Origin: Octopus sinensis
Lineage: Eukaryota
Direction of reading: 5' to 3'
Length of the DNA stretch: 64,000 nt
Assembly: GCF_006345805.1 (NCBI RefSeq)
Contig: NC_043011.1
Span: 65,112,464 to 65,176,463, forward strand
In this document: positions 9,494 to 9,593 of the stretch, piece by piece
How positions within the stretch are numbered: position 1 is the first letter of the stretch
Layout of the letters: each line of letters begins with the position of its first letter
Program-made: the position numbers and the translations under genes
Notes under the pieces: generated by a model
The model's database searches: none
Seen by the model: only the letters and a program-made list of their open reading frames with translations
What the model was told of the DNA's origin: nothing

Positions 9494-9593
9494 GTGTATC
9501 AACGTCTTTCTTTATTCCCATGTGTACTGGTTACTCGGACATTCGTTGTGCCTACACCTATAGAAACAATGCAGCCGCACGCCCTGTCCATCG
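9494..9593 (+). CDS. Gene A exon 2: (S)VSTSFFIPMCTGYSDIRCAYTYRNNAAARPVH(R)
   Basis: ttttccttcaaatcctag| acceptor, CG|gtaggt donor. 100 nt, open in the phase set by exon 1, codon-aligned with three paralogous exons. Confidence 0.85.

Follow-up and report, generated by a model that had tools for sequence, protein, structure and literature searches.

Introduction

The combination of conserved introns with a hypervariable exon is already well known from the genes of toxins and immune peptides. In MHC class I and class II genes, as Cereb, Hughes and Yang reportedly found in 1997, recombination homogenises the introns while the peptide-binding exons stay diverse. Sea urchins carry the Sp185/333 (SpTransformer) genes, small immune-type genes arranged in tandem, whose flanking microsatellites are thought to promote recombination and diversification. 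Substitution is elevated in the conotoxin genes of Conus, and on that ground targeted mutagenesis has been proposed for them (Wu et al., 2013, PMC3862624; Conticello et al., 2001, cited there). Most tests on myticin-C were neutral, with only local hints of selection (PMC4558851, PMC3164099), and both positive selection and targeted mutagenesis have been left open for the citrus SCAmPPs (PMC4409773).

Here we describe four tandem copies (A to D) of a predicted three-exon gene in the window, by which we mean the whole stretch of DNA that was analysed, 64,000 nucleotides from Octopus sinensis. Like the MHC genes, the array appears to set old exon lineages in young homogenised introns, and in the pair B-D the boundary likewise lies near the exon; MHC diversity, however, is allelic, and balancing selection acts on it, dN exceeding dS at binding sites, whereas the diversity of the array lies between tandem paralogues. 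The array also resembles Sp185/333 in forming a tandem cluster with flanking microsatellites, but those genes have two exons, the second a large mosaic of elements, and no sequence similarity to ours. Conotoxin genes share three exons with the array, two introns longer than 3 kb, a first intron in phase 1 and a conserved signal peptide; in both, the introns are conserved between members and rich in simple repeats, the exons are GC-richer than the introns, and the hypervariable exon carries trinucleotide (in-frame) indels. The hypervariable part of a conotoxin is nevertheless the last exon, which encodes the mature C-terminal toxin with a fixed Cys framework, whereas the array has a variable middle exon, a conserved, Cys-free hydrophobic last exon and only two shared cysteines, and its dN/dS is not significantly above 1.

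The Mytilus MgCRP-I genes (PMC4558851; PMC3164099, with myticin-C) have the same intron phases as the array and a middle exon of ~100 nt, but differ from it in six invariant cysteines, a dibasic cleavage site and hypervariability of the last exon with demonstrated positive selection. Myticin-C resembles the array in its tandem genes and in recombination or gene conversion between copies. The citrus SCAmPPs (PMC4409773) are likewise unannotated genes for tiny precursors, lie in clusters and place a short hypervariable peptide stretch beside near-identical flanks; unlike the array they are a plant family with a single intron, cyclic products of 5-10 residues and a variable stretch of only 15-24 bp. 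No sequence similarity to the conotoxin or MgCRP superfamilies was found in a search of 5.8 billion proteins, Pfam and PDB or in an HMMER profile search, and no homology to Mytilus MgCRP-I or myticin-C was detected. The array falls outside the compared families on three counts: it shares no sequence similarity with them, its Cys framework is not fixed, and its variable region is the middle rather than the last exon.

Results

Four collinear units carry a predicted three-exon gene

The window is eukaryotic, AT-rich (GC 25-40%) and rich in transposable elements, with (TA)n, (AC)n and (AAT)n microsatellites dense throughout and mariner-like remnants among them. Self-BLAST resolved four collinear tandem units (Table 1), and searches of the window by blastn and tblastn found neither a further gene copy nor a copy of exon 1 in unit C. 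Homology of unit C to A and D begins at A 7791 and includes no copy of exon 1 or of the promoter; exon 2 of this unit, whose branch is the longest, still has its splice sites and an open frame.

The predicted precursor is 59-65 amino acids long and consists of a signal peptide, a variable Cys-containing core and a conserved hydrophobic tail. Intact precursors of 65 and 59 amino acids are encoded by A and B, respectively, and every copy has canonical splice sites with matching intron phases (1, then 2). There are three coding exons; exon 1 encodes most of the signal peptide, which is split by the phase-1 intron. A reading made earlier from the sequence alone (hereafter the sequence-only reading) had placed exon 2 of copy A at exactly the positions given in Table 1, and its borders (acceptor tcctag/GTGTAT, donor CATCG/gtaggt) are conserved in all four units. 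In A, B and C a very strong polypyrimidine tract precedes exon 3, which encodes (R/G)LFGYAILTTILQTQIIL and a stop. In frame 0 of exon 3, a longer ORF, VIWLRYINNYSTDTNYFRMKCYMRRIL, ending in a common TGA, is conserved in the same three copies (14936-15019, 36495-36578, 47520-47603) and has no in-frame join to exon 2 as modelled. Copy D (60120-60158) has cattaaat in place of the TATAAAA of A and B, and its exon 1/2 junction codon is Cys, not Ser.

Kyte-Doolittle means over 9 residues reach 2-3.3 at the N-terminus and 0.8-1.7 in the last 18 residues, and the middle is hydrophilic. Within the core a C-x7/8-C loop is conserved, and its two cysteines are the only ones common to all copies, which carry totals of 2, 3, 4 and 4 in a framework that is not fixed. 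By inspection only, an invariant N-A is followed by A/G/D, then x-R-P/V-x-x-R/G and the tail. Going by residue order, this N-A-(A/G/D)...R-P spacer with a hydrophobic C-terminal tail would fit the rule-of-thumb layout of a GPI-attachment signal (small residues at the omega site, then 5-10 polar residues before the tail), which we offer as a lead only. Both parts of a CD52/CD24-like layout, an N-terminal signal peptide and a moderately hydrophobic C-terminal stretch, are present in the predicted precursor.

The spacers at 16017-22035 (minus strand) and 48755-51054 hold non-LTR retroelement ORFs. Retroelement ORF relatives at ~50% identity occur in corals, a sea star, shrimp, a killifish and hydrozoans, and the nearest are in Logan run SRR7158634 (90%) and assembly GCA_024449705.1 (76%). 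Two pairs of segments are closely alike, 20709-21811 and 49217-50311 at 95% identity and 22985-24820 and 53251-55085 at 96.8%, and these identities point to a probable higher-order duplication of spacer plus unit start. In A, a copy-specific insertion in intron 1 (8413-9123) with a retroelement ORF remnant lies directly 5' of the (TA)n array before exon 2. Copy B contains a mariner-like transposase remnant (~30480-31183, motif PDIAPSDF.LF) ~55 nt 5' of its exon 2 acceptor, where it may affect splicing of this copy; a related sequence lies at 39349-40172, upstream of unit C. Very long (AAT/ATT)n arrays (17900-18600, 20700-20860, 22200-22476, 48400-48600, 50122-50686) yield spurious poly-Ile, poly-Asn and poly-Tyr ORFs, and the density of simple repeats in the window is unusually high. 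A search of the whole window against Rfam gave no match.

Table 1. Positions of the units, predicted gene parts, repeats and divergence tracts, numbered from the first letter of the window.
Feature	Positions	Strand	Details
Unit A	385-16100	+	gene copy A complete; self-BLAST collinearity with B, C and D
Unit B	24467-37245	+	gene copy B complete; lacks ~3.6 kb present upstream in A and D; self-BLAST
Unit C	42827-48450	+	5'-truncated, exons 2 and 3 only; self-BLAST
Unit D	54720-64000	+	cut by the window end before exon 3; self-BLAST
TATAAAA, copy A	6420-6426	+	34 nt upstream of ATG; identical in B
Exon 1 coding part, copy A	6454-6493	+	MMKIAAFIFVLLI + 1 nt; donor gtaagt; phase 1
Exon 1 coding part, copy B	26425-26464	+	
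Exon 1 coding part, copy D	60159-60198	+	
Exon 2, copy A	9494-9593	+	100 nt; frame offset 2; VSTSFFIPMCTGYSDIRCAYTYRNNAAARPVH; GC 48% vs 12-31% in flanks
Exon 2, copy B	31238-31319	+	82 nt; net 18-nt in-frame deletion; LPTCSNMCATRAAYYHCNNADVRVAP
Exon 2, copy C	44660-44759	+	VSSICTMDLCKNAGGYYWCNTCKDNAAVRPVH
Exon 2, copy D	62487-62586	+	VSSSCIIGMCTGYSGFRCGTSYSENAGVRPAQ
Exon 3 coding part, copy A	14936-14993	+	(R)LFGYAILTTILQTQIILE, stop; preceded by 19/20 pyrimidine tract and cag acceptor
Exon 3 coding part, copy B	36495-36552	+	
Exon 3 coding part, copy C	47520-47589	+	stop 4 codons later; AATAAA 27 nt past stop
(TA)n microsatellite, A	9159-9386	.	108 nt upstream of exon 2; counterparts D 62134-62368, C 44516-44540
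(AT)n microsatellite, D	62681-62769	.	95 nt downstream of exon 2; counterpart B 31448-31518
Putative A-D conversion tract, intron 1	7167-7567	+	A-D 1-8%; A-B and B-D 15-16% where aligned; p=0.0005
Low-divergence island, intron 2	9811-10110	+	A-D 5-9%; all pairs 4-13% at 10000-10099; contains 9874-10030
Homogenised tract, intron 2 of B	31361-32694	+	near-identical to D 62596-63957 (1-5% per 100 nt) and to C; A 10-25% off
RVT_1	19569-20552	minus	spacer between units
zf-RVT	20938-22035	minus	spacer between units

Exon 2 is more diverged than homologous noncoding DNA in five of six pairs

The sequence-only reading had set a fast exon 2 against a slow intron in the pair A-D, and its counts were reproduced: exon 2 differs at 24/100 nt, with the amino acid changed in 15 of 32 codons, as against 7/157 nt in a piece of intron 2 (9874-10030 vs 62892-63048; Fisher p=5.6e-6). 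The low counts for the outer exons also held, at 1/40 (A-B), 3/40 (A-D) and 4/40 (B-D) for exon 1 and 3/58 (A-B) for exon 3, and the description of a conserved signal and tail with a variable core is correct. Over all six pairs, the claim that exon 2 is more diverged than the intron stands in five and is weakest in A-D itself. Exon 2 K is 1.5-5.3 times the homologous noncoding K, an excess that is significant in five pairs (p from 6e-6 to 1e-12). In the pairs other than A-D it is 2.7-5.3 times the mean noncoding K, and exon 2 ranks at or near the top among all homologous 100-nt windows; in A-D, the comparison with all homologous noncoding sequence gives p=0.058.

A-D is the weakest pair because the stretch used for comparison lies in a low-divergence island (Table 1) and the intron flanking exon 2 is as diverged as the exon. 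Noncoding divergence in this pair spans 1-28 per 100 nt, and the intron adjoining exon 2 (A 9320-9469 and 9570-9760) stands at 22-24 per 100 nt, equal to the exon; against its 100-nt upstream flank, exon 2 gives p=0.39. The diverged block of A-D is thus wider than the exon, so block boundaries do not always track it. The strongest pair is B-D, with 43% in exon 2 against ~12% just downstream. Here the excess is limited to exon 2, with 35/82 differences and a further 18 nt in indels as against 13/57 in the upstream and 37/300 in the downstream flank (p=1e-8), and the divergence boundary falls within ~40 nt of it.

Part of the island (A 9950-10100, B 31709-31860, C 44815-44965, D 62968-63118) is conserved in all six pairs at 4-13%, unlike the pair-specific tracts described below, and could be a repeat or a constrained element. 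The intron 2 stretch near it, A ~9862-9946, has an inverted 78% copy at 12725-12809 and so may be a repeat.

Noncoding DNA is a mosaic of pair-specific tracts

Gene conversion homogenising the introns had been put forward in the sequence-only reading as a possible contributor, and this part of it is well supported. The noncoding parts of the units form a mosaic of near-identical tracts, each specific to particular pairs: A and B are closest at 6300-6499 (2-3%), B and D at 6500-6999 (2-12%) and A and D at 7200-7499 (1-6%), and at 10100-10799 B, C and D differ mutually by 1-10% with A 10-25% from each. Sawyer-type concordant runs, following GENECONV logic and assessed by permutation, gave p=0.0005-0.0015 for B-D, p=0.0005 for A-D, p=0.004 for A-B and p=0.002-0.012 for B-C, the best of which survive correction for ~18 tests. 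The topology also changes along the unit. The outlying copy is B in exon 2 and in the flank before it (12 and 22 B/ACD sites) and A at 10100-10800 (78 A/BCD sites), ~500 nt downstream of exon 2. Judged from these alignments, the mosaic and the switch of outlier are the signature of gene conversion or unequal exchange, and we infer that the tracts come from conversion, not from staggered duplication. A recent duplication of B and D was rejected as a simple account, their identity being only 78-86% upstream, where other pairs are closer.

Wherever the flank survives, (TA)n arrays lie on both sides of exon 2, at a distance of ~110-120 nt on the upstream and 95-130 nt on the downstream side, and roughly delimit the diverged block; the downstream (AT)n is degenerate in A (~9740-9760) and deleted in C. 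Divergence within the exon is itself patchy. At sites that differ between A and D, C agrees with D at 10/10 in exon positions 10-60 and with A at 7/9 in positions 61-94 (permutation p=0.002-0.005). This clustering of lineage-specific changes suggests short patch exchange, possibly with paralogues beyond the window.

Our preferred reading, held with moderate confidence, is a concerted tandem array in which the introns, exon 1 and exon 3 have been homogenised and the exon 2 block is older or has been exchanged in patches. The gene, an orphan with three exons that codes for a small secretory precursor, would evolve in concert along the array, with patchy gene conversion or unequal exchange keeping introns, exon 1 and exon 3 alike in certain pairs of copies. 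This homogenisation would bypass a block of ~100-400 nt that has exon 2 at its centre and is bounded roughly by the two (TA)n microsatellites. It would consist of older or differently derived sequence, partly swapped in short patches, and its homogenisation may be disfavoured by selection for different peptides.

Synonymous sites of exon 2 are as diverged as nonsynonymous sites

The primary inference of the sequence-only reading, diversifying selection on the peptide, was not demonstrated by our tests: dN/dS in exon 2 is ~1 and dS is raised like dN, the very pattern that the reading had named as refuting it. The sample comprises four paralogues of 26-32 codons, with dS estimated on ~21 sites and subject to wide error. 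NG86 dN/dS was 1.06 for A-D, 1.55 for A-C, 1.33 for C-D and 0.5-0.95 for pairs with B, and was significantly above 1 in no pair (Fisher test of N vs S, p=0.46-0.78). dS was 0.29-0.41, rising above 0.75 in pairs with B, whose exon 2 core aligns poorly, so that dN and dS of these pairs depend on the alignment. As raised as dN, dS greatly exceeds the divergence of the homogenised introns and equals or exceeds that of the oldest noncoding blocks. Differences are spread evenly over the three codon positions, and 7 residues are invariant where 9.4 were expected by chance; conserved residues being no more frequent than that, the data do not indicate that sites under constraint are mixed with sites under positive selection. 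In B-D, synonymous sites alone stand well above the flanks (p=1e-5 to 8e-4), which is beyond what selection on the peptide can produce.

We consider it unlikely that positive diversifying selection mainly drives the core apart, with conversion doing no more than accentuate the contrast. On the A/C/D tree, nonsynonymous change does amount to 0.53 per site vs 0.31-0.32 in the oldest noncoding blocks (p=0.0006), a standard that is itself affected by conversion and an excess in which dS shares. The point estimates of dN/dS among A, C and D lean towards such selection, as do the reading frame kept at 24-46% divergence and the confinement of the B-D excess to the exon, but dN never significantly exceeds dS, codon positions have changed evenly, and the synonymous excess of B-D is left over. 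Two cysteines present in all copies, together with an in-frame indel, recall the hypervariable exons of conotoxins, yet the Cys framework around them varies, and unit C, with no exon 1, nevertheless has the longest exon 2 branch. Diversity-maintaining selection is plausible, the nonsynonymous excess and the intact frame being the two results in favour of some selection.

Exon 2 is probably coding

The GC content of exon 2 is 48-52% in all copies vs 12-31% in the flanks. Noncoding DNA of the units carries 0.076 indels per substitution, 27% of them multiples of 3; among A, C and D, exon 2 has 0 indels where 3.8 were expected (P=0.023), and the net change in B is 18 nt. The modelled frame is stop-free in 4/4 copies (P=0.04-0.08, neutral simulation). 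Plus-strand offsets 0 and 2 are both stop-free in 4/4 copies, with a joint P of ~0.001-0.003 in neutral simulation. Of the other frames, frame 0 was rejected as incompatible with the exon 1 phase, plus-strand frame 1 has stops in all copies, and no minus-strand frame is open in all exon 2 copies. An RNA gene was rejected because RNAalifold on the four copies found no compensatory pairs. Since the reading frame is preserved, with no frameshifts or stops, exon 2 is probably coding, to judge by the letters of four copies. The gene is presumed to be expressed.

The opposite possibility, a decaying or never-functional orphan ORF in which exon 2 drifts and conversion erased divergence elsewhere, strikes us as improbable, although several observations agree with it. 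The 65-amino-acid precursor has no homologue in 5.8 billion proteins, Pfam or PDB, and across ~15 billion predicted proteins, Pfam and PDB homologues are absent. A profile of the four copies, run exhaustively with HMMER against 1.84 billion representatives, matched only translated tandem satellite repeats, which we discarded as spurious. Exons 1 and 3 are conserved no better than flanking noncoding DNA, and three of the four copies are defective or incomplete: B has the mariner-like insertion, C is without exon 1, and in D the TATA is altered and exon 3 lies past the end of the window, leaving only A unblemished. A dN/dS of ~1, uniform codon positions, invariant residues at or below chance and a second open frame (frame 0) would also suit a sequence free of constraint. 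Such a sequence would, however, have had to escape frameshifts, take its one deletion in frame and avoid stops in four copies, with a joint P of ~3e-4 as a product that assumes independence. It would also have had to keep its high GC amid AT-rich surroundings and its splice sites in all copies, and drift cannot carry a sequence past the divergence of unconverted neighbours, as exon 2 is carried in five of six pairs.

Mutation at the exon 2 cassette

Error-prone repair or recombination targeted to an exon 2 cassette and possibly tied to (TA)n would raise dS and dN alike; no such process is known to have been demonstrated for the germline genes of animals. We judge it very unlikely: dS and dN are indeed both raised, lineage-specific changes cluster in patches, microsatellites bracket exon 2 in all units and transversions predominate (ts:tv 7:17 to 14:26 vs ~1:1 in noncoding DNA), but the last difference rests on few sites, the A-D flanks are as diverged as the exon, and the clusters are explained just as well by an exchange of patches with unseen paralogues. 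Targeted mutagenesis has been discussed for conotoxin and SCAmPP genes (PMC3862624, PMC4409773). Hypermutability driven by CpG or GC was rejected, given that transversions predominate and GC-rich noncoding windows are barely faster.

Discussion

The concerted array with an older or patch-exchanged exon 2 remains our preferred reading. With dN/dS ~1, dS raised and the frame kept, the contrast between exon 2 and the rest of the unit describes an old or patchwork exon among young introns more than an adaptive rate. The nonsynonymous excess over the oldest blocks fits an old exon alone only if those blocks have been partly converted.

A more specific possibility, which we regard as distinctly unlikely, is that the array belongs to a new family of very small GPI-anchored surface peptides (mature form ~20 residues). 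The tail encoded by exon 3 would serve as the anchor signal, and exon 2 would be a diversity cassette bracketed by microsatellites, shielded from homogenisation and diversified by patch exchange among many paralogues.

In a tandem array, even a large contrast in divergence between exon and intron is not in itself proof of positive selection, since synonymous sites here are as diverged as nonsynonymous ones. With four copies in 64 kb, the locus is a compact case that allows the tracts of conversion, the limits of these tracts and a protected exon to be read straight from the sequence. Provided that the gene is real, it represents an orphan family of peptides, secreted or at the surface and not annotated before, with the type of architecture seen in venom, antimicrobial and recognition genes. 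Should the surface-peptide reading prove true, the array would be part of a germline-encoded variable surface repertoire in an invertebrate.
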